IMG/VR virus record: IMGVR_UViG_3300020154_000003
Location: 62,001-126,000 of that record
DNA length: 64,000 nucleotides
Strand: one strand, 5' to 3'
Shown: one piece after another, positions 5,410 to 63,677 of the stretch
How the letters are laid out: each line of letters starts with the position of its first letter
Numbering within the stretch: position 1 is the stretch's first letter
Notes under the pieces: model-generated
What the model saw: only the letters and a program-made list of their open reading frames with translations
What the model was told of the DNA's origin: nothing
Database searches by the model: none
Program-made: the position numbers and the translations under genes

Positions 5410-6903
5410 TTACATGAGTGATTTTTTTTGTGTTATACCAGACAATCTCAATATCTTGTTTACTTGCTCATCTCCACCGCCCATTGATTCCTCAATCACG
5501 TTTTTAGAAGATGATTCAACAATAGTTGAAGCTATCTTGTTTTCGAGTGATTCAGTAAGAGTTTCTTTCTTCGTTTCTGCGTACTCCTTAAGAGTCTCTT
5601 TGTAAACTTTTTCAGATTCGTTGATTGAACCTACTTTCTTAAACTTCTCGATGATGTTTTTCTTATCGTCTTGTGAAAGTGCGAAACTCTCATTAACCAA
5701 CAAGTTATTTACATATGAAATGTTTGTGTTCAATACCGCCATTTCTTTCAATTGGTCTCTGTATTTTTCAAGAGCACCTTTGTAGTTTTCGTTCAAAGAA
5801 GTTACAGCATTTGCTTTCTTAGTTGCTTCAGTCAAAGAAGATTTAGCTTCCGCTAATTCAGCCTTAGCTGTATTCAACTGTTTCATCAAATTCATATTTT
5901 CCTTAAGCATGGCAGACATCTTTTTTTCGATAGACTCTTTTTGGAGAGCCAATCTTACTTTGTTTTCTGCATAACCTTTTCCATTGTCAAGGCTAGGTTG
6001 TGATTCTTGTCCAACAAGTTTATTGTGAGACAATGACACTCCGTGTCCTTCGTCAACTGGCTTTTCAGCAGCTTCAGCAGCAGGTGCTACTTCTTCTTGT
6101 ACCGGAGCCGCAGCAGGCTTTGAAGCACCACCTTTGGTTTTCTTGTACATGTCGAAAAGTTCGTTTACTTTAGATTCCTCCATTTGAGCCTTATATGTTT
6201 CACCATACATCTCAGACATTTTAGAATGGAATTCTTCCATCAATTGTTGATTTTCGTTCATTTCATCAATTTCTTTAAGATATTTACCCATTTCTTCATG
6301 TATTTGCTTAAATCTGTCAATGGGGTTATTGCTTGGTTGTTGTACTACAGCCTGTTGTTGAGGCTGTGCAGCAGCTTGTTGTGCTTGCATTTGTTCAGCT
6401 TGGTTGATTTCCTTCATCATTTCATCAATTTCACCTTCAATTGAAGTGAGATCAAAATTGTCCTCACCACCACTTGCAGGTAATTGCTGTTGATCTGCAG
6501 CACCGAGAACGGGAGCCTGCTGACTAGCATCGTCTCTCACTACTTGAAACTCATCTTCTGGTTGTGCGCTGTCGAACGCTGCCTCTACTTCAGCCAATGA
6601 AGCTTCCTTCATGTTGATCGTATTTGGTGCGCTAACCCCCACTACCTCTTGCGTTTCGCCAATTGGTTTTTGTACCATTGTTGACTCTTTAATATTGTCT
6701 TTTTTAGACTCTTTACCTTCTGCCATTACTGGCTCACTTGTATTAACGTTTTCTTGTAAAAATTTCTGGATCAAACTGTCAAGTTCAGCCTTGTTGTTTT
6801 CAACAAGTTTGCTCTTAGCAGCCTTTAGTACTTGCTCATATTCTAAAAGGGCTTCTTTTAAAACTGATTCATTTTTGAAATTTTCTTTGTTATTATCTTT
6901 CAT
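5410..6903 (-). CDS. prohead core/scaffold protein (gp22-like)
   Basis: Acidic coiled-coil, between protease and capsid genes, many [ILV]xE sites. Confidence 0.7.
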   Translation of the reverse strand: MKDNNKENFKNESVLKEALLEYEQVLKAAKSKLVENNKAELDSLIQKFLQENVNTSEPVMAEGKESKKDNIKESTMVQKPIGETQEVVGVSAPNTINMKEASLAEVEAAFDSAQPEDEFQVVRDDASQQAPVLGAADQQQLPASGGEDNFDLTSIEGEIDEMMKEINQAEQMQAQQAAAQPQQQAVVQQPSNNPIDRFKQIHEEMGKYLKEIDEMNENQQLMEEFHSKMSEMYGETYKAQMEESKVNELFDMYKKTKGGASKPAAAPVQEEVAPAAEAAEKPVDEGHGVSLSHNKLVGQESQPSLDNGKGYAENKVRLALQKESIEKKMSAMLKENMNLMKQLNTAKAELAEAKSSLTEATKKANAVTSLNENYKGALEKYRDQLKEMAVLNTNISYVNNLLVNESFALSQDDKKNIIEKFKKVGSINESEKVYKETLKEYAETKKETLTESLENKIASTIVESSSKNVIEESMGGGDEQVNKILRLSGITQKKSLM

Positions 6904-26848: not shown

Positions 26849-27109
26849 ATGGAAGTTGAAGTGTTGAACGCATTTGTTACCAAATGGAATGATACCACGG
26901 TAATATGTTACATGGTTGAGGAAGAGTCACTTAGAGAGTTCAATAGGACACCATTATTTGCTGATTATAAGCTATTTAAAGGTAAGGAAGTAACGTTCGA
27001 AGTGAACATCCAGCCCGGAGAAATGAAAGTGCTATGTAAGGAGAAAGGAACTAAGAAAATAGTTCAAAAGAAACGGTACTGGCTTTGGAAGCTTAAAAAT
27101 ATGTTTTAG
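26849..27109 (+). CDS. hypothetical protein
   Basis: 86 aa; promoter 26799-26821. Confidence 0.6.
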   Translation: MEVEVLNAFVTKWNDTTVICYMVEEESLREFNRTPLFADYKLFKGKEVTFEVNIQPGEMKVLCKEKGTKKIVQKKRYWLWKLKNMF

Positions 27110-27181
27110 TAACCATGATTGGAATCGAACCAATATCCTTCGAGTCAGAGTCGAAAATAATAACCGTTATACTACATGGTA
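27110..27181 (-). tRNA. tRNA-Gln(CTG)
   Basis: Cloverleaf; anticodon arm TTCGA-CTCTGAC-TCGAA. Confidence 0.88.
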
Positions 27182-27182
27182 G

Positions 27183-27255
27183 TTTTCCTGTCAGGATTCG
27201 AACCTGAACTGAGTAATCCAAAGTTACTCGTGCTGAACCGTTACACTACAGGAAA
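27183..27255 (-). tRNA. tRNA-Gln(TTG)
   Basis: Cloverleaf; AGTAA-CTTTGGA-TTACT. Confidence 0.9.
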
Positions 27256-27258
27256 ATA

Positions 27259-27334
27259 TGGGGCGATGAGTAGGAGTCGAACCTACATCTGCCCGCCTCA
27301 ATGCAGGCCGTGTTACCACAACACTTCCCTCGCC
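27259..27334 (-). tRNA. atypical tRNA (His-type 8-bp acceptor, 8-nt loop CATTGAGG)
   Basis: D and T arms intact, encoded CCA, anticodon ambiguous. Confidence 0.6.
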
Positions 27335-27336
27335 AT

Positions 27337-27519
27337 TTAACTTACAAACTTGAATTTCTTCATGAAATCACTTTGAGTAAACCATTGTTTACAATTAATT
27401 CCTTCTTTAGTTCGGGCAGTACGAGTGACTTCAATTGAGTTACTTGTCTTACCAGTAATTTTTTCAATTACTTTTCCATCCAATACGGAATCACCAATTT
27501 TTATTTCTTCGAAACTCAT
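27337..27519 (-). CDS. hypothetical protein
   Basis: MSFEEIKIGDSV..., trimmed to avoid tRNA-Pro. Confidence 0.55.
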   Translation of the reverse strand: MSFEEIKIGDSVLDGKVIEKITGKTSNSIEVTRTARTKEGINCKQWFTQSDFMKKFKFVS

Positions 27520-27521
27520 AG

Positions 27522-27595
27522 TCGGGGCAGCAGGATTCGAACCTGCGATTTCTTGCTCCCAAAGCAAGCGCGATACCGGACTTCGCTATACCCCG
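27522..27595 (-). tRNA. tRNA-Pro(TGG)
   Basis: CGGGG acceptor; CTTGC-TTTGGGA-GCAAG. Confidence 0.93.
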
Positions 27596-27599
27596 TGTT

Positions 27600-27677
27600 T
27601 GGGTGATTGAGGGGACTCGAACCCCCGTTCTTCAGAGCCACAATCTGACGCTTTCGGCCAACTAAGCTACAACCACC
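27600..27677 (-). tRNA. tRNA-His(GTG)
   Basis: G-1:C73 acceptor; TCAGA-TTGTGGC-TCTGA. Confidence 0.93.
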
Positions 27678-27684
27678 ATGTATA

Positions 27685-28020
27685 TTAAAAATCAAAATTC
27701 TTTGTCAATCTTTTTAAAATATAATCTTTGACACAAGAAGCCAACACCTTACTTCTTTTATAACCTAAAACTTTTTTCGTGTAACTGCCAGTACCTTTGC
27801 AATCACTGCACTCAGGATCATAATTATTTCCGTAATCATAGTTCTCATTGCAGTAACACGTTTCATTTCTAGTTGTATCTTCTAAATTACCTCCACCACT
27901 ACTATTCTCACTAGAGAATGAAACCCAATCCACATAATCATCAGTACAATTGGTGACGATGCAGATGCTACCATAAGGGCTTTTAATTACGTTACCTGTT
28001 CTAAAGGGTGTCATGTTCAT
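27685..28020 (-). CDS. hypothetical protein with CxxCxGxG motif
   Basis: CSDCKGTG. Confidence 0.6.
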   Translation of the reverse strand: MNMTPFRTGNVIKSPYGSICIVTNCTDDYVDWVSFSSENSSGGGNLEDTTRNETCYCNENYDYGNNYDPECSDCKGTGSYTKKVLGYKRSKVLASCVKDYILKRLTKNFDF

Positions 28021-28064
28021 TTTTATTTAAAAACTGGACATACTATCATAATGTGTCCAGTTTG

Positions 28065-28143
28065 TCGCGTAGGCAGGATTCGAACCTGCGCAAATCTCCT
28101 GTGTCCAAGACAGGCGGGAACGGCCAGACTTCCCCACTACACG
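28065..28143 (-). tRNA. tRNA-Pro(TGG)
   Basis: CCTGT-CTTGGAC-ACAGG; T arm GCAGG-TTCGAAT-CCTGC. Confidence 0.88.
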
Positions 28144-28151
28144 ATATAAAC

Positions 28152-28182
28152 AAAAAAAACCCAAGCTTTTGGCTTGGGTTTT
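28152..28182 (-). terminator. attenuator terminator, tRNA operon 1
   Basis: AAAACCCAAGC-CAAAA-GCTTGGGTTTTTTTT. Confidence 0.9.
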
Positions 28183-28203
28183 CTGTATTGTCCTAATTAT
28201 ATT

Positions 28204-28302
28204 TTATCTATTTAGTGGACATAGAATACAAAATCCTCCCAAGCATGAGCATTGTGGCTGATGTTGGGGGTGTTGAAGTGCTATGTTTACTAATGTTTTC
28301 AT
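28204..28302 (-). CDS. leader peptide 1 (Gln/His/Pro sensor) MKTLVNIALQHPQHQPQCSCLGGFCILCPLNR
   Basis: 32 aa ORF between promoter and terminator; CAA CAC CCC CAA CAT CAG CCA CAA run. Confidence 0.85.
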   Translation of the reverse strand: MKTLVNIALQHPQHQPQCSCLGGFCILCPLNR

Positions 28303-28317
28303 TTCGTTATTGTGATG

Positions 28318-28356
28318 CAAATGTAATAGTAAATACGTAGATTCCAAAAAAAGGTT
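28318..28356 (-). promoter_or_regulatory. composite promoter of tRNA operon 1
   Basis: AAC-N16-CGTA, overlapping GTATTTA, then TACATTTG. Confidence 0.75.
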
Positions 28357-28375
28357 CAATTATTTTTTCACTTTT

Positions 28376-29422
28376 TTATTTAGGGCCAAAACTTCTATTT
28401 GGATTACCCCACAATTTAGCAGCAGAATCGGAGTGGGGAACATCAGGATGCAATGTCTCGCCAGTAAGTTCCTCAACCCATTTATACATCTCAGATGCAA
28501 TACCCATCCTTCTTTTATCGGGTCTCACATCAATACTTGCTTTCATTATTGAAGACTCATGCTGTTTACCGTAACTTACGTGACCTACCTCAGTACCATC
28601 TTCATTATCGAATGCGTATATATCGCCCCAAAGAAACCATTTCTCTTCAGGATATGGGTCTTTAATATGTATTAATGTAACCTTCGGAAGAACTTTCTTT
28701 TGATCGTAATTGGTGTAGTCCTTAAGTTTTTCTCTTTTATTTTTAACAAATTCAACACCAACATCATCATATGCCTCTTGAATCATTTCACCAACAAAAG
28801 CTGGTACTGGTCGCTTCGATCTATTCAATGAAAGTTCTAAACCCTTCTTCCAGTTAGGAGGCAAATTTGTAACGACATCGTTTATGTCTGTTTTTGTTTT
28901 TTCAAAATAATCTAAGATTTGGTCTTCCTGATGATCTTGAATATCTGGTGACACTAAAAATATAGTCCTGTTTGGAAACTCTATAAAGTAGTTCGTACTA
29001 ACTCTTTTAAGGCTGTCCCACACTCTGGTTGCATCGACTGTTCTATCAGTGTCAGTTGTTTTGTCTTTGTCTGATGACGATACAAACCCTAATTGATCGG
29101 AAAGCTTCTCATATATTTTCTTACCTAAACCGAGATTTCTAAAAGTATTTGGGATAGGCTCAACCGTCAAAATGTAATTAAAATTGGTAGGATCAATCAT
29201 GATTGATGGATTCCCAATTTCAGAATCAGCTTTAAACTGTGCATTAATTTCAGGGTCTCTGAAACCAATTTCATACCTACGATTATTGGCTTTTGGGATC
29301 AAAAGAATATCGTCTTTGGAAAGATTTTTGACTTTTTGCTGAATAGGGCTAACAGCATTGTCTGGTACGAGTTCAGAAATGTAGTTTTCCAGTTCTTCCT
29401 TAATTAAGTATTTTAAATCCAT
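28376..29422 (-). CDS. tandem GNAT acetyltransferase-like protein
   Basis: Two acetyl-CoA motif A copies: FRNLGLGKKIY and RRMGIASEMY; late motif at 29436. Confidence 0.65.
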   Translation of the reverse strand: MDLKYLIKEELENYISELVPDNAVSPIQQKVKNLSKDDILLIPKANNRRYEIGFRDPEINAQFKADSEIGNPSIMIDPTNFNYILTVEPIPNTFRNLGLGKKIYEKLSDQLGFVSSSDKDKTTDTDRTVDATRVWDSLKRVSTNYFIEFPNRTIFLVSPDIQDHQEDQILDYFEKTKTDINDVVTNLPPNWKKGLELSLNRSKRPVPAFVGEMIQEAYDDVGVEFVKNKREKLKDYTNYDQKKVLPKVTLIHIKDPYPEEKWFLWGDIYAFDNEDGTEVGHVSYGKQHESSIMKASIDVRPDKRRMGIASEMYKWVEELTGETLHPDVPHSDSAAKLWGNPNRSFGPK

Positions 29423-29451
29423 TTAAGATTTTTTTATAAATACTTAACTTT

Positions 29452-29955
29452 ATGCTATATTTGTATTTTATGGGATTGGACATCAATACAAGTAAAGGTC
29501 AACTTTCACTCACTCAGGAACGAGAGGTTCAGGAGATTGTTAGTAGTAAATGGAAGGTTGACGTAATTGAAACAGGGAAGGACTCGATTGCTGCCTGTGA
29601 TGGCTTTCTAAGCCGAAATAACGTGATTATAGCCTGTTTTGAGACTAAATGCAGGTATGACATGACTTATGAGGAACTACTGGACAGGGGTAGCTGGTTG
29701 GTCACTTTCGATAAAATAAAGAAGTGTCAATTAGTGTCAAAATTGTTGCAAGTTCCCTTTATAGGGTTCCTTTATTTGCTACCTAAAAGCAACCCGGAAC
29801 AAAAATTGTTGGTCTATTGGAAGATTACGGATAAACAAGGGAACTTTGTTTTTGATTTTGAGGTAATGGATCAGGCAACGCAAAGGACGATTAACGGTGG
29901 AGAGACGGTCAGGCGAAATGCTTATCTTCCCGTAAATGAAATGGTTATTCTATAA
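29452..29955 (+). CDS. PD-(D/E)XK nuclease-like protein
   Basis: CDG...FETKCR motif; true start may be a few codons downstream. Confidence 0.6.
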   Translation: MLYLYFMGLDINTSKGQLSLTQEREVQEIVSSKWKVDVIETGKDSIAACDGFLSRNNVIIACFETKCRYDMTYEELLDRGSWLVTFDKIKKCQLVSKLLQVPFIGFLYLLPKSNPEQKLLVYWKITDKQGNFVFDFEVMDQATQRTINGGETVRRNAYLPVNEMVIL

Positions 29956-29963
29956 GTATTTAT

Positions 29964-30479
29964 ATGAAAAACAAAATGAAAAAGCCTACTAACGAATCGA
30001 TTACTAAAAATGCTGCTAATCTGGACGAGATCATCAACAATGTGGATGAGATGGAAATGATTCTACAGTCTAAAGAATTCCAAACCGCATTGGTTAATGA
30101 TTTAATCAGTGGGAAAAGGAATGTTGTAGAGTGGAAGTTGATTGACGGTAGTGGTAGTTTGGATGATGTTGAAAAGGGAACAATCAAAGACTATTTTGGT
30201 ATTGATTATAGCTTCGACTTCAAATACAGATACAATGGAAAGGTAATTCCTTTGACATTGTTCATTGGTGGTAGAGTGCATTTTAATGCGACACCAGTAC
30301 GTAGTGGAGATTGGATGACACCTCCCGAAGGTGGTGAAGTAACGGTAGATGAGAAGAACTTAGGGAGCGGTCTTGAATTAAGTTTGTTTGATCAAGAAGG
30401 TTCAGAAATTAGTGTGAAATGGCTAACACCTGATTTAGAGAAAAAATTAGCCAGAGAAATTATTAAGGATTACGTTTAA
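29964..30479 (+). CDS. hypothetical protein
   Basis: 171 aa, GTATTTAT at 29956. Confidence 0.65.
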   Translation: MKNKMKKPTNESITKNAANLDEIINNVDEMEMILQSKEFQTALVNDLISGKRNVVEWKLIDGSGSLDDVEKGTIKDYFGIDYSFDFKYRYNGKVIPLTLFIGGRVHFNATPVRSGDWMTPPEGGEVTVDEKNLGSGLELSLFDQEGSEISVKWLTPDLEKKLAREIIKDYV

Positions 30480-30887
30480 ATGAAAAAGTACAATCTCTAT
30501 TTGGATGATGTTAGAAAGCCAATTGATTCTTTGGATTATACCAAGAATAAGGCATATGTTACAGAAGAATGGGAGATCGTAAGATCATATGATGCTTTTG
30601 TGGCGCATATTACGAAGCATGGTTTGCCCGAACTTGTTTCGTTCGACCATGACTTGGCAGAGCCACATTATCATGAAAGCATGTATAAAGATGGGAAGGT
30701 TTATATGAAATATTTGGAAACCATTTCTGAAAAAACTGGCATGGATTGCGTTAAGTGGTTGGTGGAATACTGTCTCGATAACGGAAAAAAATTCCCAAAT
30801 TGGTACTTACACACCATGAATCCAGTTGGCCACGAGAACATGAAATCGTACATAATGTCGTTTTTGAAGCATTCAAGCACGATTTAG
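30480..30887 (+). CDS. cyclic-phosphate-processing receiver-like domain protein
   Basis: LYLDDVR, SFDHDL, TGMDC..WL, HTMNPVG motifs. Confidence 0.8.
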   Translation: MKKYNLYLDDVRKPIDSLDYTKNKAYVTEEWEIVRSYDAFVAHITKHGLPELVSFDHDLAEPHYHESMYKDGKVYMKYLETISEKTGMDCVKWLVEYCLDNGKKFPNWYLHTMNPVGHENMKSYIMSFLKHSSTI

Positions 30888-30951
30888 TATAGTTTACATT
30901 ATATTGGCATTAGGTTCGCATAAGGACTAATGTATTTAACCCCAAAGTGTA

Positions 30952-31266
30952 ATGAAACTGTTTGATAAGGTTAGTAATTTCCAAGAAGGCAAGGCAAATG
31001 TCCTTTATAATGAGATCGTTGATAAATTATCAGGTGATACTACCAATGAGAAAATCAGAACCGTTTGCCTTGACATTCTTGATAAGAAAATCAAGTTTGC
31101 TAACTCGCATAGAAAAAAAGGGAAAATAAATTTGATGGAAAATGAAATTTTCTTTGCAAATACGATAATTCATAATATCTTTGCGCCAGAGTATTCGATC
31201 ATCATCTCGAACGATGAGTTCGGACTCTCAGGAAGAAAAATCAAAAATAAATGGGAAAAACTGTAA
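30952..31266 (+). CDS. hypothetical protein
   Basis: 104 aa ORF. Confidence 0.55.
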   Translation: MKLFDKVSNFQEGKANVLYNEIVDKLSGDTTNEKIRTVCLDILDKKIKFANSHRKKGKINLMENEIFFANTIIHNIFAPEYSIIISNDEFGLSGRKIKNKWEKL

Positions 31267-31315
31267 CATTTTATAATTTTTTCCGTATTTACTAACAAAC
31301 CAGATAATACATTCG
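31265..31315 (+). promoter_or_regulatory. composite promoter of tRNA operon 2
   Basis: AAC-N16-CGTA overlapping GTATTTA; degenerate TACATTCG. Confidence 0.7.
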
Positions 31316-31318
31316 AAA

Positions 31319-31435
31319 ATGAAAACTTTAATATCATCAGTAACTTTAGAAGCATTAGCATTGAACGCTATGGCGGTTGCCTTAGTGGAGGATGATATGC
31401 GTCATGGGTTTTCTGATATTATAGTTGGATTCTAA
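31319..31435 (+). CDS. leader peptide 2 (Val/Leu-UUR/Glu/Ala/Met/Asp sensor) MKTLISSVTLEALALNAMAVALVEDDMRHGFSDIIVGF
   Basis: 38 aa ORF before terminator; 18 of 20 codons (8-27) are V/L/E/A/M/D; all Leu codons are TTA/TTG. Confidence 0.85.
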   Translation: MKTLISSVTLEALALNAMAVALVEDDMRHGFSDIIVGF

Positions 31436-31458
31436 AAAAATAACAACATCAAATCAGG

Positions 31459-31484
31459 AAACCCGACCGAAAGTCGGGTTTTTT
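31459..31484 (+). terminator. attenuator terminator, tRNA operon 2
   Basis: AAACCCGAC-CGAAA-GTCGGGTTTTTT. Confidence 0.9.
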
Positions 31485-31511
31485 GTTTTTAGGAGTTCTT
31501 TGAAAATAAAA

Positions 31512-31705
31512 AGTAATCGATGCGTGGTGGAATTGGTATACACTGCCTTTGAAACGCGATAAAACACATGAGCAACCAGTAAGCTGTTGTCATGATGCGC
31601 TGAGTAGTTGGACTGTCCGATGAAATCTAATCGGGCTGCGGGGGATAAACCGTGGGTTGTTTTCAACATCCAATACAGGTTCGAGTCCTGTCGCTGAAGA
31701 TTGCT
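31512..31705 (+). ncRNA. large tRNA-like RNA
   Basis: Leu-type D arm GTGGAATTGGTATACAC, T arm ACAGG-TTCGAGT-CCTGT, closing AGTAATC/GATTGCT, ~130 nt insert. Confidence 0.55.
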
Positions 31706-31717
31706 AGTAATTAAAAT

Positions 31718-31794
31718 GGTGCATTGGTGAAGTTGGTTATCATGCTTGCCTGTCACGCAAGAGTTCACGGGTTCGAGTCCCGTATGCACCGCCA
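31718..31794 (+). tRNA. tRNA-Asp(GTC)
   Basis: CTTGC-CTGTCAC-GCAAG; encoded CCA. Confidence 0.95.
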
Positions 31795-31797
31795 CTT

Positions 31798-31869
31798 AGT
31801 CAGTGGGTACGTAGGTATGTATGTCCGGCTGTCACCCGGAAGAAGCGGGTTCAATTCCCGTACTGACTG
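31798..31869 (+). tRNA. tRNA-Asp(GTC)
   Basis: TCCGG-CTGTCAC-CCGGA. Confidence 0.85.
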
Positions 31870-31895
31870 CGAAGGATGGTTGCAAACATCAGGGT

Positions 31896-31967
31896 TGTAT
31901 GTTCGTCTAGGGGTCTAGGACACTCCCTTCATCGGGGGAAACATTGGTTCGAATCCAATACATACTC
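31896..31967 (+). tRNA. atypical tRNA (Glu-type D arm, irregular anticodon loop TTCATC[G])
   Basis: Acceptor GTATGT/ACATAC, T arm ATTGG-TTCGAAT-CCAAT. Confidence 0.55.
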
Positions 31968-31972
31968 AAATT

Positions 31973-32080
31973 GGTTGTGTAGTTTATGCGACTGTAAAAT
32001 CGGTCGGGCGTGTGATGCGCAGCATGTTTGGTTAGAATACTCTGGAATGAGAGAAGCAGGTTCGAATCCTGACACAACCG
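31973..32080 (+). ncRNA. tRNA-like RNA with D-loop insertion
   Basis: Acceptor GGTTGTG/CACAACC, T loop TTCGAAT, non-canonical anticodon loop. Confidence 0.55.
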
Positions 32081-39804: not shown

Positions 39805-39843
39805 AACTTTTTTTTGGAAATTACGTATTTATCTTTACCTTTG
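39805..39843 (+). promoter_or_regulatory. composite promoter of tRNA operon 3
   Basis: AAC-N16-CGTA, GTATTTAT, TACCTTTG. Confidence 0.75.
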
Positions 39844-39879: not shown

Positions 39880-39948
39880 ATGAGAACTTCAAAGACATAT
39901 AAAACTTATAAGTATCAGCCACAAGCTGAGTCGAGTTTTATTGTCTAA
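39880..39948 (+). CDS. leader peptide 3 (Lys/Tyr sensor) MRTSKTYKTYKYQPQAESSFIV
   Basis: 22 aa ORF; AAG ACA TAT AAA ACT TAT AAG TAT run. Confidence 0.85.
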   Translation: MRTSKTYKTYKYQPQAESSFIV

Positions 39949-39971
39949 AAATATCTTGCAAGGAAGACACC

Positions 39972-40004
39972 AAAAACCCGATTCAGAAATGAGTCGGGTT
40001 TTTT
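39972..40004 (+). terminator. attenuator terminator, tRNA operon 3
   Basis: AAAAACCCGATTCA-GAAA-TGAGTCGGGTTTTTT. Confidence 0.92.
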
Positions 40005-40019
40005 GTTTTATAGAGATTT

Positions 40020-40277
40020 ATGCTAGACCTGAAAAAAATAAGTGGCGAGTTTGATGCTCTCTTGAAAACCAAGACCAAAGAGGATTTGGAGAAATGGTTG
40101 CGCATGGATAAAAAGCGAATGAAAAAAGAACGAATACCGAGGAAGGATAAAAAATCCTTGAAAAAAGAAGGTGAGCGTTTCAAAAAGGAATTGAAAAACA
40201 GTCCACTGCTAAAAGGTACTGGACGATCATTTAAAACGGCAGAAGAATTTAAAAGTTATGTCAACAAAAAAGGATAA
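40020..40277 (+). CDS. Lys-rich hypothetical protein
   Basis: 85 aa, very Lys-rich. Confidence 0.55.
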   Translation: MLDLKKISGEFDALLKTKTKEDLEKWLRMDKKRMKKERIPRKDKKSLKKEGERFKKELKNSPLLKGTGRSFKTAEEFKSYVNKKG

Positions 40278-40441
40278 ATGTGAGATTGGAATTTGCGTGT
40301 TGTCGATCATTCGTTCAACTACGAGTGCGACTACACCATGCGATCACACATGCCAATACTACGATAAAATGAAAAAGATGAAACGAAAACAATAAAACTA
40401 CACTACCAGTGAGTCATGTCACGGGTGTGTAGTTAAAAAAC

Positions 40442-51400: not shown

Positions 51401-51439
51401 AACTTTTAATTGCAAGTCTCGTATTTATGGTTACATTTG
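51401..51439 (+). promoter_or_regulatory. composite promoter of tRNA operon 4
   Basis: AAC-N16-CGTA, GTATTTAT, TACATTTG. Confidence 0.75.
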
Positions 51440-51454
51440 CAACGCATTAAAAAA

Positions 51455-51586
51455 ATGGAAAAACTAACGTCAAATATTAATCGATCAAACTGGTGTGGAA
51501 GTAATTCTATATCAGGGAATATTCTTGGCTCTACATTTAGAGGCACGAACGGGTTAATGTTTGATACAGATGGTGGAACACTGTAA
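51455..51586 (+). CDS. leader peptide 4 MEKLTSNINRSNWCGSNSISGNILGSTFRGTNGLMFDTDGGTL
   Basis: 43 aa; codons 4-33 use only L,T,S,N,I,R,W,C,G,F. Confidence 0.85.
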   Translation: MEKLTSNINRSNWCGSNSISGNILGSTFRGTNGLMFDTDGGTL

Positions 51587-51610
51587 ATAGAAGAAAAAAT
51601 ATCAAACACT

Positions 51611-51638
51611 AACCCGACCCAAAAAGTCGGGTTTTTTT
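51611..51638 (+). terminator. attenuator terminator, tRNA operon 4
   Basis: AACCCGAC-CCAAAAA-GTCGGGTTTTTTT. Confidence 0.9.
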
Positions 51639-51646
51639 ATGTCTAT

Positions 51647-51740
51647 ACATCGGCATTCATTGGTGAGATAAGCAGTCTCCAAAACTGTGCGAAAGGAGTA
51701 ATTACTGAGTAGCTTGTGGGTTCGAATCCCACCCTTTGTG
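51647..51740 (+). tRNA. atypical tRNA-Trp(CCA), long variable arm, weak acceptor
   Basis: GCAGT-CTCCAAA-ACTGT; GTGGG-TTCGAAT-CCCAC. Confidence 0.6.
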
Positions 51741-61539: not shown

Positions 61540-61612
61540 GTCTTAGTAGCACAATTGGCGGTGCAACGATCTCTAAAATCGGAGGATGCGGGTTCGATCC
61601 CCGCCTAAGGCA
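61540..61612 (+). tRNA. amber suppressor tRNA (CTA)
   Basis: GTCTTAG/CTAAGGC acceptor; CGAT-CTCTAAA-ATCG. Confidence 0.85.
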
Positions 61613-61613
61613 C

Positions 61614-61894: not shown

Positions 61895-62674
61895 ATGAAA
61901 GCAAAAAAAACTAAGAAAACTGCTAAAACCAGCACAAAAAGACCCGCCAAGAAGAAGCCTACCGCAAAAGCAAAAGCCTCATCAAAGACCAAAGCGAAAG
62001 CTAAGGTTAAATCCAAATTGGATTATACACACATAATCGCAGTACTGGACAAATCCAGTTCTATGCATTCAGTAGCGAATGCTGCCATGAAAGGTTTTAA
62101 TGAATTCCTGACATCACAAAAAGCCTTAAAAGGGAAAGCCACTATGGACGTGTTATTGTTCAGTAGTGCTGATAAAATCGACTATATCTCGCAGGGTGTT
62201 GACATCAGTGAGGTTGCTGAATTAACCTCTGAGACTTATCGTCCTCAGGGCACTACAGCATTATTCGATGCAATCGTGAAAGCCACTTCAACTTACAAAC
62301 TGAAGTATGATGAATTGAAGCCTTCAAAGAGACCCGATAAGATTTTGGTAATTGCTATTACTGATGGAGAAGAAAATAGCAGCACAGAATTTCCTATAAG
62401 TAAAGTTGGTGATGTCAAAGCATTGATCACAAAACGTAAGTCGGAAAACTGGCAGTTTATGTTCTTGTGCTCGACTGAAGATGCCGTGTTAACTGGCGAA
62501 TCTCTTGGAGTTTCAAGAGGTAACACAATGCAGTTTACCAATAGCGATCTTGGTAATCAAGCCATGTACTCTGCTGTGGCATCTGCTGCGACCATGTACA
62601 GATCGACTTCACTGAGAAGTAAGAGTTTTAGCAAGGTCAGCGATAATTTGCTGGCTGAGGATGATATTTCCTAA
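61895..62674 (+). CDS. vWA domain protein with Lys/Ala-rich N-tail
   Basis: MIDAS LDKSSSM, GTTALFDAI, ITDGEENSS. Confidence 0.88.
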   Translation: MKAKKTKKTAKTSTKRPAKKKPTAKAKASSKTKAKAKVKSKLDYTHIIAVLDKSSSMHSVANAAMKGFNEFLTSQKALKGKATMDVLLFSSADKIDYISQGVDISEVAELTSETYRPQGTTALFDAIVKATSTYKLKYDELKPSKRPDKILVIAITDGEENSSTEFPISKVGDVKALITKRKSENWQFMFLCSTEDAVLTGESLGVSRGNTMQFTNSDLGNQAMYSAVASAATMYRSTSLRSKSFSKVSDNLLAEDDIS

Positions 62675-63585: not shown

Positions 63586-63658
63586 GAGAGTATGGCTCAG
63601 TGGTTAGAGCAAGGACTTCTAAACTCCTAGGTCGTGGGTTCGAATCCCACTACTCTCT
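63586..63658 (+). tRNA. amber suppressor tRNA (CTA)
   Basis: GAGAGTA/TACTCTC acceptor; AGGAC-TTCTAAA-CTCCT (C31:C39 mismatch). Confidence 0.75.
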
Positions 63659-63677
63659 CTCAATAAAATAAAAAGTT

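Follow-up and report, generated by a model that had tools for sequence, protein, structure and literature searches.

Several bacterial operons are controlled by ribosome-mediated (leader-peptide) transcription attenuation, a textbook mechanism known for amino-acid biosynthesis and a few other operons. In the enterobacterial leaders trpL, hisL, leuL and pheL, and in the multi-amino-acid leaders thrL (Thr and Ile) and ilvL (Ile, Val and Leu), a short translated ORF carries a run of regulatory codons, and the position of the ribosome decides between mutually exclusive 1:2, 2:3 and 3:4 helices and thus between termination and read-through at an intrinsic terminator just before the regulated genes. 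The pheM leader of the Escherichia coli pheST operon uses the same principle to regulate a component of the translation apparatus, phenylalanyl-tRNA synthetase, according to the supply of the cognate charged tRNA. T-box riboswitches also control translation-related genes by a terminator/antiterminator decision, but bind uncharged tRNA directly through a specifier loop and the T-box sequence, without a ribosome or an ORF. In the mgtL and mgtP leaders of Salmonella mgtA and mgtCBR, slow decoding of Pro codons changes downstream RNA structure and transcription. T4-like and huge phages carry large tRNA gene clusters, which in the literature we could find are described as promoter-driven cargo, with no codon-sensing control reported.

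Here we analysed a 64-kb window (positions 62,001 to 126,000) of the 366-kb IMG/VR contig IMGVR_UViG_3300020154_000003, which derives from a T4-like jumbo phage encoding a Gp23-type capsid, a Gp20-type portal and a T4-type terminase; the window contains 52 tRNA genes. The sequence and comparative evidence supports the presence of a leader-peptide attenuator (A1; minus strand, 28348-28152) ahead of a cluster of Pro, His and Gln tRNA genes. Like thrL and ilvL, this leader would sense several amino acids, but its output is tRNA genes rather than biosynthetic enzymes. In contrast to pheM, which is cellular, senses a single amino acid and regulates a synthetase that cures a charging defect, the phage element would regulate the tRNA itself and cure a tRNA shortage. 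The mgtL and mgtP leaders control Mg2+ transport and virulence genes and are unrelated in sequence and host. At Rfam gathering thresholds only tRNAs were reported over the whole window, and at E-values up to 5 over positions 27000-32000 the only leader hit was Leu_leader at 18.8 bits against a threshold of 50, on the wrong strand. No T-box was matched at any threshold used.

All sequence features of the original prediction, which proposed an attenuator with 1:2, 2:3 (antiterminator) and 3:4 (terminator) pairings that senses Gln, His and Pro decoding, are present on the minus strand. The promoter (28348-28318) consists of a -33 TTTG (28348-28345), a 19-nt spacer containing CGTATTTA and a -7 box TACATTTG (28325-28318), which appears to be of the Bacteroidota sigma-A type. 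TTTG-N19-TAnnTTTG occurs five times in the window against 0.76 expected, and 0 of 100 shuffles reach five. The longer motif CGTATTTAnnnTTACnTTTG occurs exactly three times, each just upstream of a leader (A1 and the sister units A3 and A4 described below). The leader ORF (28302-28204) comprises 32 codons plus a stop (MKTLVNIALQHPQHQPQCSCLGGFCILCPLNR) and begins about 15 nt from the inferred transcription start without a Shine-Dalgarno sequence, which is normal for Bacteroidota. Its control run QHPQHQPQ (CAA CAC CCC CAA CAT CAG CCA CAA; 28275-28252) samples both Gln codons, both His codons and two Pro codons, and also contains segment 1 (CACCCCCAA, 28272-28264). A run of 7-8 of 8 codons read by this tRNA cluster occurs in 0 of 11,006 windows of the phage's long genes.

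Segment 2 (GCUUGGGAGGAUUUUGUAUUCUAUGUCC, 28244-28217) lies inside the ORF at codons 20-29 and pairs either with segment 1 or with segment 3 (GGACAAUACAGAAAACCCAAGC, 28193-28172). GCTTGGG..TTTTGTATT..TGTCC in segment 2 is complementary to GGACA-AATACAGAA-CCCAAGC in segment 3, the 3' part of which (28184-28172) is the terminator 5' arm. The intrinsic terminator is a 13-bp G+C-cored stem (AGAAAACCCAAGC / GCUUGGGUUUUUU; 28184-28154; -13.9 kcal/mol for the core) with the loop CAAAA, followed by a run of eight T to 28152. The CCCCCAA:UUGGGAGG (1:2) hairpin and the terminator are both in the minimum-energy fold (-47.2 kcal/mol, z = -3.07; 1 of 200 shuffles folds as well). The terminator is one of only five strong hairpin-plus-T-run terminators in the 64 kb (four with perfect stems and the A4 stem with one G.U pair), four of which sit between a leader ORF and a tRNA cluster. 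On the same strand, the downstream genes (28143-27109) are tRNA-Pro(TGG) (28143-28064), a 111-aa ORF (28020-27685), tRNA-His(GTG) (27676-27601), tRNA-Pro(TGG) (27595-27521), a small ORF, an odd Gln-like tRNA with a 6-nt anticodon loop (27333-27259), tRNA-Gln(TTG) (27255-27182) and tRNA-Gln(CTG) (27181-27109). As the first tRNA starts 9 nt after the T-run, there is no room for a separate promoter and transcription must pass through the terminator to reach it. Searches of the neighbouring proteins against PHROGs and Pfam gave almost no annotation.

To test the geometry of the proposed switch, the leader was folded with a ribosome placed codon by codon, assuming a 30-nt footprint. In the full-length A1 transcript at thermodynamic equilibrium the terminator wins at every ribosome position, which refines the original prediction in that the switch must be kinetic (co-transcriptional), as in trpL. 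Co-transcriptional kinetics could only be approximated by cutting the transcript before the terminator 3' arm. In this nascent transcript, the probability that CCCAAGC is already paired in the antiterminator (GCUUGGG:CCCAAGC) is 0.97-0.99 with the A-site at codons 8-15, partial at codons 16 and 17 (0.61 and 0.42), 0.00-0.25 at codons 18-33, and 0.21 with no ribosome, which in this model places the switch at the control run. The same step falls at the end of the control run in A2, A3, A4 and in homologue L399 (0.96-0.99 falling to 0.11-0.22), one of the related loci described below.

The window contains three further units of this architecture, all on the plus strand, and the four units together would gate nearly all 52 tRNA genes. 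A2 (31319-31485) comprises the leader MKTLISSVT-LEALALNAMAVALVEDDM-RHGFSDIIVGF (31319-31435) and a terminator (31455-31485) ahead of Asp x2, Leu(CAA), Ala, Leu(TAA), Glu x2, Met x3 and Val x3 tRNAs, and has homologues in the loci L399, L362 and L092. A4 (39880-40005, with a promoter at 39813-39843) comprises the leader MRTS-KTYKTYKY-QPQAESSFIV (39880-39948) and a terminator (39972-40005) ahead of Lys x3 and Tyr x3 tRNAs; seven other Lys/Tyr-rich leader variants sit ahead of Tyr/Lys tRNAs in other phages. A3 (51455-51638, with a promoter motif at 51420-51439) comprises the leader MEKL-TSNINRSNWCGSNSISGNILGSTFRGTNG-LMFDTDGGTL (51455-51586) and a terminator (51611-51638) ahead of Asn, Phe, Thr, Arg, Ile, Met, Ser, Gly, Trp, Leu(AAG/TAG), Cys and other tRNAs, with an analogue in the L021/L046 group of loci. 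Each leader is rich in the codons read by its own downstream tRNAs (chi-square P = 1.5e-9). The control runs are 7/8 (A1), 15/18 (A2), 6/8 (A4) and 29/29 (A3; binomial P = 4.4e-8 for the whole leader) cognate, and 0 of about 11,000 windows in long genes reach any of these values, although the A4 run contains two Thr codons whose tRNAs lie in another cluster. Leucine is split by codon box: TTA/TTG occur in the A2 control run, whose cluster has tRNA-Leu(TAA, CAA), while CTA/CTT occur up to the end of the A3 control run, whose cluster has tRNA-Leu(TAG, AAG). Furthermore, Trp codons appear in the A2-type leaders of L399 and L092, whose clusters hold tRNA-Trp, but not in A2 of the window, whose cluster lacks it. 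Across 24 candidates chosen by an objective filter, 0.504 of leader residues have a cognate tRNA downstream, against 0.301 +/- 0.027 after permutation (0 of 20,000 permutations reach it).

In total, 31 distinct homologues of the Q/H/P leader were identified in phage and metagenome contigs. tRNA-Pro is the first downstream gene in all 29 in which one can be seen, and the chains contain only Pro, His and Gln tRNAs apart from one Asp. TAnnTTTG is upstream of 29 of the 31 leaders. Frame 0 is open in 31 of 31 homologues, whereas frames +1 and +2 are open in 0 and 8, respectively. All 31 keep a run of 7-10 Q/H/P codons, with synonymous CAA/CAG and CCG/CCT/CCA variants within identical runs; however, as the set was collected with a pattern that required CAM-CCC-CAA, conservation of that motif cannot be judged. 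Two homologues (L399 and L362) keep His codons in the run although no tRNA-His is visible in their cluster. The N-terminus MK(T/N/R)L(V/I)NI is conserved, while the C-terminal half is not. The median gap between terminator and first tRNA in the family is 44 nt, and in some members it is 114-641 nt, which could hold a second promoter.

Segment 2, the terminator 5' arm and the 3' arm change together across about five stem alleles (GAAU/AUUC/GAGU, GCUU/AAGC/GCUU, GAAC/GUUC/GAAC, GAGU/ACUU/AAGU and GAGU/ACUC/AGGU), and compensatory changes occur at seven terminator stem positions. Because an initial pair count relied on predicted duplexes and folds, which return canonical pairs by construction, and because MAFFT alignment of the K/Y units misregistered the short stems, pairs were counted in fixed, anchored register with permuted partners. 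In 30 of the 31 homologues (one has no GGG anchor), segment 2 pairs with its own terminator arm at 3.93 of 4 positions, against 2.85 for arms from other loci. The residues encoded by segment 2 follow the RNA (EWG, LNG, LLG), so it is the RNA pairing that is conserved, not the peptide. Contigs of 90-95% relatives differ by about 2% across the attenuator, against 6-10% in the flanking genes. The metatranscriptome-labelled runs that hold these relatives cover coding and non-coding DNA evenly, are probably DNA, and gave no information on transcript ends.

The family was found only in phage contigs. Among the representative genomes of 185,579 species, 91 pattern matches yielded only one true hit, which is a mis-binned phage contig. 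A megablast search with 10 kb of the window found no match among GenBank phages, and tblastn searches with the capsid and the VWA protein found only distant relatives and no cultured host. A search for loci related to the GNAT-like neighbour found only the window's own contig, a generic Bacteroidota promoter pattern was too unspecific and gave no new attenuators in viral contigs, and the pattern ATGAAAACW..GCACNTCAAC found nothing there beyond the window and the loci L126 and L154. The closest syntenic relative (IMGVR_UViG_3300032157_000001; L041) shares about 60% amino-acid identity, and tRNA sequences were too divergent (60-89%) to serve as a search pattern.

Taken together, we propose that this element is a ribosome-mediated transcription attenuator controlling a phage tRNA operon, a reading to which we assign a probability of roughly 0.86 on sequence and comparative evidence alone, as translation of the ORF, function of the terminator in the unknown (probably Bacteroidota) host and increased read-through upon stalling are inferred. 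In this model, transcription starts at a host-type promoter and a ribosome follows the polymerase. If charged tRNA-Gln, -His and -Pro are plentiful, the ribosome runs through QHPQHQPQ and onto segment 2, the terminator 5' arm is free to pair with its 3' arm, and transcription stops 9 nt before tRNA-Pro. If any of these codons is read slowly, the stalled ribosome covers segment 1 and leaves segment 2 free to capture the terminator 5' arm as soon as it is made, and the polymerase reads on into the tRNA genes. With no ribosome, segments 1 and 2 pair and the terminator forms. The result would be a negative feedback loop, in which a shortage of decoding capacity for a codon set switches on the phage's own tRNAs for exactly that set.

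Other explanations of the locus appear very unlikely. The hairpin lies about 190 nt downstream of the stop codon of the 348-aa GNAT-like gene (28376-29422, minus strand) and is thermodynamically dominant, and could be an ordinary terminator of that gene, with a coincidental Q/H/P run and tRNAs made by leaky read-through or from an unseen promoter. However, a consensus promoter lies between that gene and the leader, the ORF, run, segment 2 and terminator are conserved together in 31 homologues with different upstream genes, no window in the long genes matches the codon run, and the layout recurs at three other tRNA clusters with different cognate codons. The conserved open frame and the Cys-rich, hydrophobic tail of the window's copy (CSCLGGFCILCPLNR) might alternatively suggest a functional micropeptide followed by its terminator, but in homologues the C-terminal half reads RMLNGETMHI, DGEWGSYT or QLVLGNSMFDTDLI and changes in step with the terminator arm, as expected for an RNA constraint, and only the N-terminus and the Q/H/P run are kept. 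It is similarly doubtful that uncharged tRNAs bind the codon run directly in a T-box-like manner, or that the switch senses only general ribosome availability. The run does display codons complementary to the anticodons of the downstream tRNAs, and A2, A3 and A4 lack a strong 1:2 helix and default to read-through without a ribosome. Nevertheless, no T-box or other riboswitch was matched even at an E-value of 5 over positions 27000-32000, a start codon, an open frame and synonymous variation are conserved, the stop codon is placed so that a terminating ribosome covers segment 2, and leader composition tracks the specific tRNA set of each cluster, which a general sensor would not need.

A different question is what the attenuator is for. 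A defence-related role, in which it would sense the loss of host tRNAs through host anticodon nucleases or the phage's own host shut-off and replace exactly those missing, rather than buffer amino-acid supply or codon-usage mismatch, remains tentative and concerns the purpose of the same mechanism. As the regulated genes are tRNAs rather than biosynthetic enzymes, only a shortage that extra tRNA can cure would make the loop useful. In addition, the element was found only in phage contigs, Lys and Tyr tRNAs, which appear to be targets of anticodon nucleases (PrrC, PARIS, retron-associated PtuAB), have their own dedicated and widely conserved attenuator, and a Gln-like tRNA with a shortened anticodon loop sits in the A1 cluster. 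Contrastingly, nothing in the sequence distinguishes the cause of the stalling, no anticodon nuclease or host is known for this phage, and all amino acids are covered, not only known nuclease targets.

More broadly, it seems likely that jumbo phages of Bacteroidota run a codon-resolved tRNA supply network, in which the whole phage tRNA repertoire is divided into a few operons, each gated by a leader peptide that acts as a live test of how well ribosomes read that operon's codons, and each group of tRNAs is made only when, and as far as, decoding of its own codons falters. This could be because the phage's codon demand outruns the host's tRNA pool, or because host tRNAs are destroyed during infection, including by tRNA-cleaving defences. 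It would be the first case known to us of tRNA genes under ribosome-mediated attenuation, and of a virus measuring translation capacity codon by codon. The family also offers compact, natural and modular sensors for codon-specific translation stress (Q/H/P, K/Y, D/E/A/V/L/M and a mixed set), the specificity of which can be read straight from the leader, and gives a rule for annotating transcription units in tRNA islands. If confirmed, wiring this device back onto tRNA genes represents a new regulatory logic for tRNA supply, changes the view of phage tRNA arrays from passive cargo to an on-demand system, and bears on the long-running question of why phages carry tRNAs.

The window is part of a 366-kb IMG/VR contig of a T4-like jumbo phage, which encodes a Gp23-type capsid, a Gp20-type portal and a T4-type terminase; the G+C content is 36.7%. 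It carries 52 tRNA genes. Two tRNAs have anticodon CUA (61540-61613 and 63586-63659, plus strand; amber suppressors, labelled Pyl by ARAGORN), which hints that TAG is read as an amino acid in part of this phage's genes. The element studied here (A1) is located on the minus strand. It begins with a promoter of the TTTG-N19-TAnnTTTG type (28348-28318), followed by a 32-codon ORF, MKTLVNIALQHPQHQPQCSCLGGFCILCPLNR (28302-28204), which contains the run CAA CAC CCC CAA CAT CAG CCA CAA (28275-28252) and, still inside the ORF, segment 2, GCUUGGGAGGAUUUUGUAUUCUAUGUCC (28244-28217). Segment 3, GGACAAUACAGAAAACCCAAGC (28193-28172), and a 13-bp terminator stem with a run of eight T (28184-28152) follow, and nine bases later tRNA-Pro(TGG), a 111-aa ORF, tRNA-His(GTG), tRNA-Pro(TGG), an odd Gln-like tRNA, tRNA-Gln(TTG) and tRNA-Gln(CTG). 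The Gln-like tRNA (27259-27333, minus strand) has a 6-nt anticodon loop (a-UUG-ag), and ARAGORN calls the same oddity among the Gln genes of a metagenome locus (L445). All features listed in the original prediction, which had described eight consecutive Gln, His and Pro codons ahead of Pro, His and Gln tRNAs and a downstream leader segment pairing with the terminator 5' arm, are present.

The free RNA folds into a hairpin between segments 1 and 2 (the 1:2 hairpin) plus the terminator at -47.2 kcal/mol (z = -3.07). A run of 8 codons of which 7 are read by the tRNAs of this cluster under strict wobble rules occurs in 0 of 11,006 windows in the long genes of the phage, and the A1 run is 8 of 8 if tRNA-Pro(UGG) reads CCC. 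Furthermore, the 64 kb contain only five strong hairpin-plus-T-run terminators, four with perfect stems and one (that of unit A4) with one G.U pair, and four of the five are located between a short ORF and a tRNA cluster.

In addition to A1 (28302-28152, minus strand; leader MKTLVNIAL-QHPQHQPQ-CSCLGGFCILCPLNR, control run between hyphens), the window contains three further units of the same architecture on the plus strand. Unit A2 (31319-31485; MKTLISSVT-LEALALNAMAVALVEDDM-RHGFSDIIVGF) precedes Asp, Leu(CAA, TAA), Ala, Glu, Met and Val tRNAs, unit A4 (39880-40005; MRTS-KTYKTYKY-QPQAESSFIV) precedes three Lys and three Tyr tRNAs, and unit A3 (51455-51638; MEKL-TSNINRSNWCGSNSISGNILGSTFRGTNG-LMFDTDGGTL) precedes Asn, Phe, Thr, Arg, Ile, Met, Ser, Gly, Trp, Leu(AAG, TAG), Cys and other tRNAs, although that the 12-kb cluster behind A3 is a single transcription unit is inferred only from the composition of its leader. 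Between the A2 and A3 terminators and the first called tRNA lie T-arm-like motifs (ACAGG TTCGAGT CCTGT at about 31674-31700 and GTGGG TTCGAAT CCCAC at about 51716-51738, plus strand), which may represent degenerate or unusual tRNAs; neither ARAGORN nor Rfam calls a tRNA there. The first feature after the A4 terminator is an 85-aa, very lysine-rich ORF (40021-40278, plus strand) ahead of the Lys and Tyr tRNAs, the translation of which would itself depend heavily on tRNA-Lys.

Scoring every leader codon by which cluster's tRNAs decode it gave a chi-square P of 1.5e-9. The control runs of A1, A2, A4 and A3 are 7/8, 15/18, 6/8 and 29/29 cognate, respectively, and none of about 11,000 windows in long genes reaches any of these values. 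The match holds at codon level, as in the control runs Leu is encoded by TTA/TTG in A2, whose cluster has tRNA-Leu(UAA, CAA), and by CTT in A3, whose cluster has tRNA-Leu(AAG, UAG); A3 also has a CTA just before its run. A 16-base promoter motif, CGTATTTAnnnTTACnTTTG, occurs exactly three times in the window, each just upstream of A1, A3 or A4. A full TTTG-N19-TAnnTTTG consensus is also present inside the 3' end of ORF 30952-31266 (31153-31183, plus strand), about 135 nt upstream of the A2 leader, and may be the promoter of A2, which would give A2 a much longer 5' UTR than A1.

To investigate whether the geometry is compatible with attenuation, each leader was folded with about 30 nt masked around every possible A-site codon. 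For the complete A1 transcript, the terminator wins at equilibrium at all positions, and the switch therefore has to be kinetic, as in trpL, which could only be approximated by folding the nascent transcript cut before the terminator 3' arm. In this nascent transcript, the probability that the CCCAAGC core is already paired upstream depends on ribosome position, being 0.17-0.23 with the A-site at codons 2-6, 0.97-0.99 at codons 8-15 (on the run), 0.61 at codon 16, 0.00-0.25 at codons 18-33 and 0.21 with no ribosome. The pairing partner is segment 2, exactly as the original prediction proposed, and without a ribosome segments 1 and 2 pair. In A2, A3 and A4 the same step falls at the end of each control run; however, these three units lack a strong 1:2 helix and default to read-through when no ribosome is present.

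The promoter motif, a VWA-domain protein encoded inside the tRNA island and a 135-aa protein of unknown function (phrog_1479) encoded between A1 and A2 were used as anchors to identify other phage contigs, 30-60% identical at protein level, with the same devices. The 135-aa protein (30480-30887, plus strand; 5978-6385 in the related locus L126/L399) keeps its place between the divergently transcribed Q/H/P and D/E/A/V/L attenuators in distantly related phages, and relatives were confirmed in 68 IMG/VR loci. Seven further Lys/Tyr-rich leaders, such as MMTIFGTYYYGKKSYKKQLIGIGNTMSKN, are located ahead of Tyr/Lys tRNAs, A3-like leaders ahead of Thr, Cys, Asn, Phe, Ser, Arg, Gly and Ile tRNAs, A2-like leaders ahead of Asp, Glu, Val, Leu and Ala tRNAs, and single mixed leaders ahead of one mixed array. 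Where an A2-type cluster contains tRNA-Trp (loci L399 and L092), the leader has a Trp codon, while the A2 unit of the window has neither. Over 24 candidates taken by an objective filter, which still includes some false positives, the mean fraction of leader residues with a cognate tRNA downstream is 0.504, against 0.301 +/- 0.027 after permuting the tRNA sets (0 of 20,000).

Homologues of A1 were found first in L126/L399 (MKTVLLNIAHQPQAQHPQRMLNGETMHI) and in a further locus, L362 (MKNLVNIQPQPQQHPQDGEWGSYT), and the set comprises 31 distinct sequences with a terminator. As this set was collected with a pattern that fixed CAM-CCC-CAA, conservation of that motif cannot be judged from it. A TAnnTTTG box is present upstream in 29 of 31, the first downstream gene is tRNA-Pro in 29 of 29, and the chains contain only Pro, His and Gln tRNAs, apart from one Asp at the end of one chain. 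However, two homologues keep His codons without a visible tRNA-His, and in some family members 114-641 nt separate the terminator from the first tRNA. The leaders are 22-32 codons long, with frame 0 open in 31 of 31, frame +1 in 0 and frame +2 in 8, and identical peptide runs are written with synonymous variants.

The stretch inside the ORF that pairs with the terminator 5' arm changes together with both terminator arms. The four bases next to the G/C run occur as the triples (segment 2/segment 3/segment 4) GAAU/AUUC/GAGU (21 sequences), GCUU/AAGC/GCUU or GUUU (3, including the window), GAAC/GUUC/GAAC, GAUC or GUUC (3), GAGU/ACUU/AAGU and GAGU/ACUC/AGGU, with one imperfect case (locus L518). 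Counted in fixed register without energy optimisation over 30 of the 31 sequences (one lacks the GGG anchor), the antiterminator (segment 2:segment 3) has 3.93 of 4 canonical pairs at its own locus (3.87 Watson-Crick) against 2.85 with other loci, and the terminator (segment 4:segment 3) has 3.87 (3.07 Watson-Crick) against 2.57. One terminator-arm base, at position +2 of the stem (28176 region of the window), pairs as U.G in most terminators (21 of 29) but as U-A in most antiterminators (24 of 31), and the antiterminator is therefore systematically the better helix per pair.

The amino acids encoded by segment 2 follow the RNA (E-W-G, L-N-G, L-L-G or C-L-G) and the peptide after the run is otherwise unconserved, which argues against a functional peptide and for an RNA constraint read by a ribosome. 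Rfam 15 reports only tRNAs at gathering thresholds over the window and nothing credible at E-values up to 5 around A1 and A2, and the element is not a member of a curated leader family or a T-box. The same pattern run on the representative genomes of 185,579 bacterial and archaeal species gave 91 matches, of which one is a true leader. This leader is located on a 362,763-bp contig deposited as a 'Candidatus Paceibacterota' MAG (GenBank JBAZIW010000001.1), which has the same length and the same Q/H/P leader plus Pro/His/Gln tRNA array as a phage-like metagenome contig (Ga0265297_10000074) and looks like a jumbo phage binned as a bacterium. As far as this search sees, the element belongs to phages.

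The phage and its relatives occur in soil metagenomes. Four runs labelled metatranscriptomic contain 90-95% relatives, but cover coding and non-coding parts alike, are probably DNA and say nothing about transcript ends. They do show that contig pieces across the attenuator differ by about 2% (4 of 199, 6 of 265), against 6-10% in the flanking genes. In two of these runs (X3 and X6), a contig from a 90-95% identical relative aligns on both sides but skips 28181-28251, the stretch from the terminator 5' arm to the end of the control run, and close relatives therefore seem to carry a replaced segment 2/segment 3 module.

The sequence and comparative evidence supports the interpretation of A1 as a leader-peptide attenuator sensing Gln, His and Pro decoding, as put forward in the original prediction, and the most likely mechanism is classical ribosome-mediated attenuation applied to tRNA supply. 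In this model, slow reading of Gln, His or Pro codons holds the ribosome on the run, segment 2 then captures the terminator arm, and the polymerase reads into the Pro, His and Gln tRNA genes, whereas fast reading carries the ribosome onto segment 2 and the terminator forms. In the absence of functional data, translation of the leader, terminator function in the unknown host, which is probably a member of the Bacteroidota as judged from the promoter consensus, and the response to stalling are inferred. For the phage, such control could relate to codon-usage mismatch late in infection, loss of host tRNAs or tRNA-cleaving defences. Full-text literature searches, which did not extend to most subscription journals, found no description of leader-peptide attenuation of tRNA genes in cells or in phages. 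While the mechanism itself is known, its wiring, a decoder gating its own production, repeated across the whole tRNA set of a phage, appears to be new.
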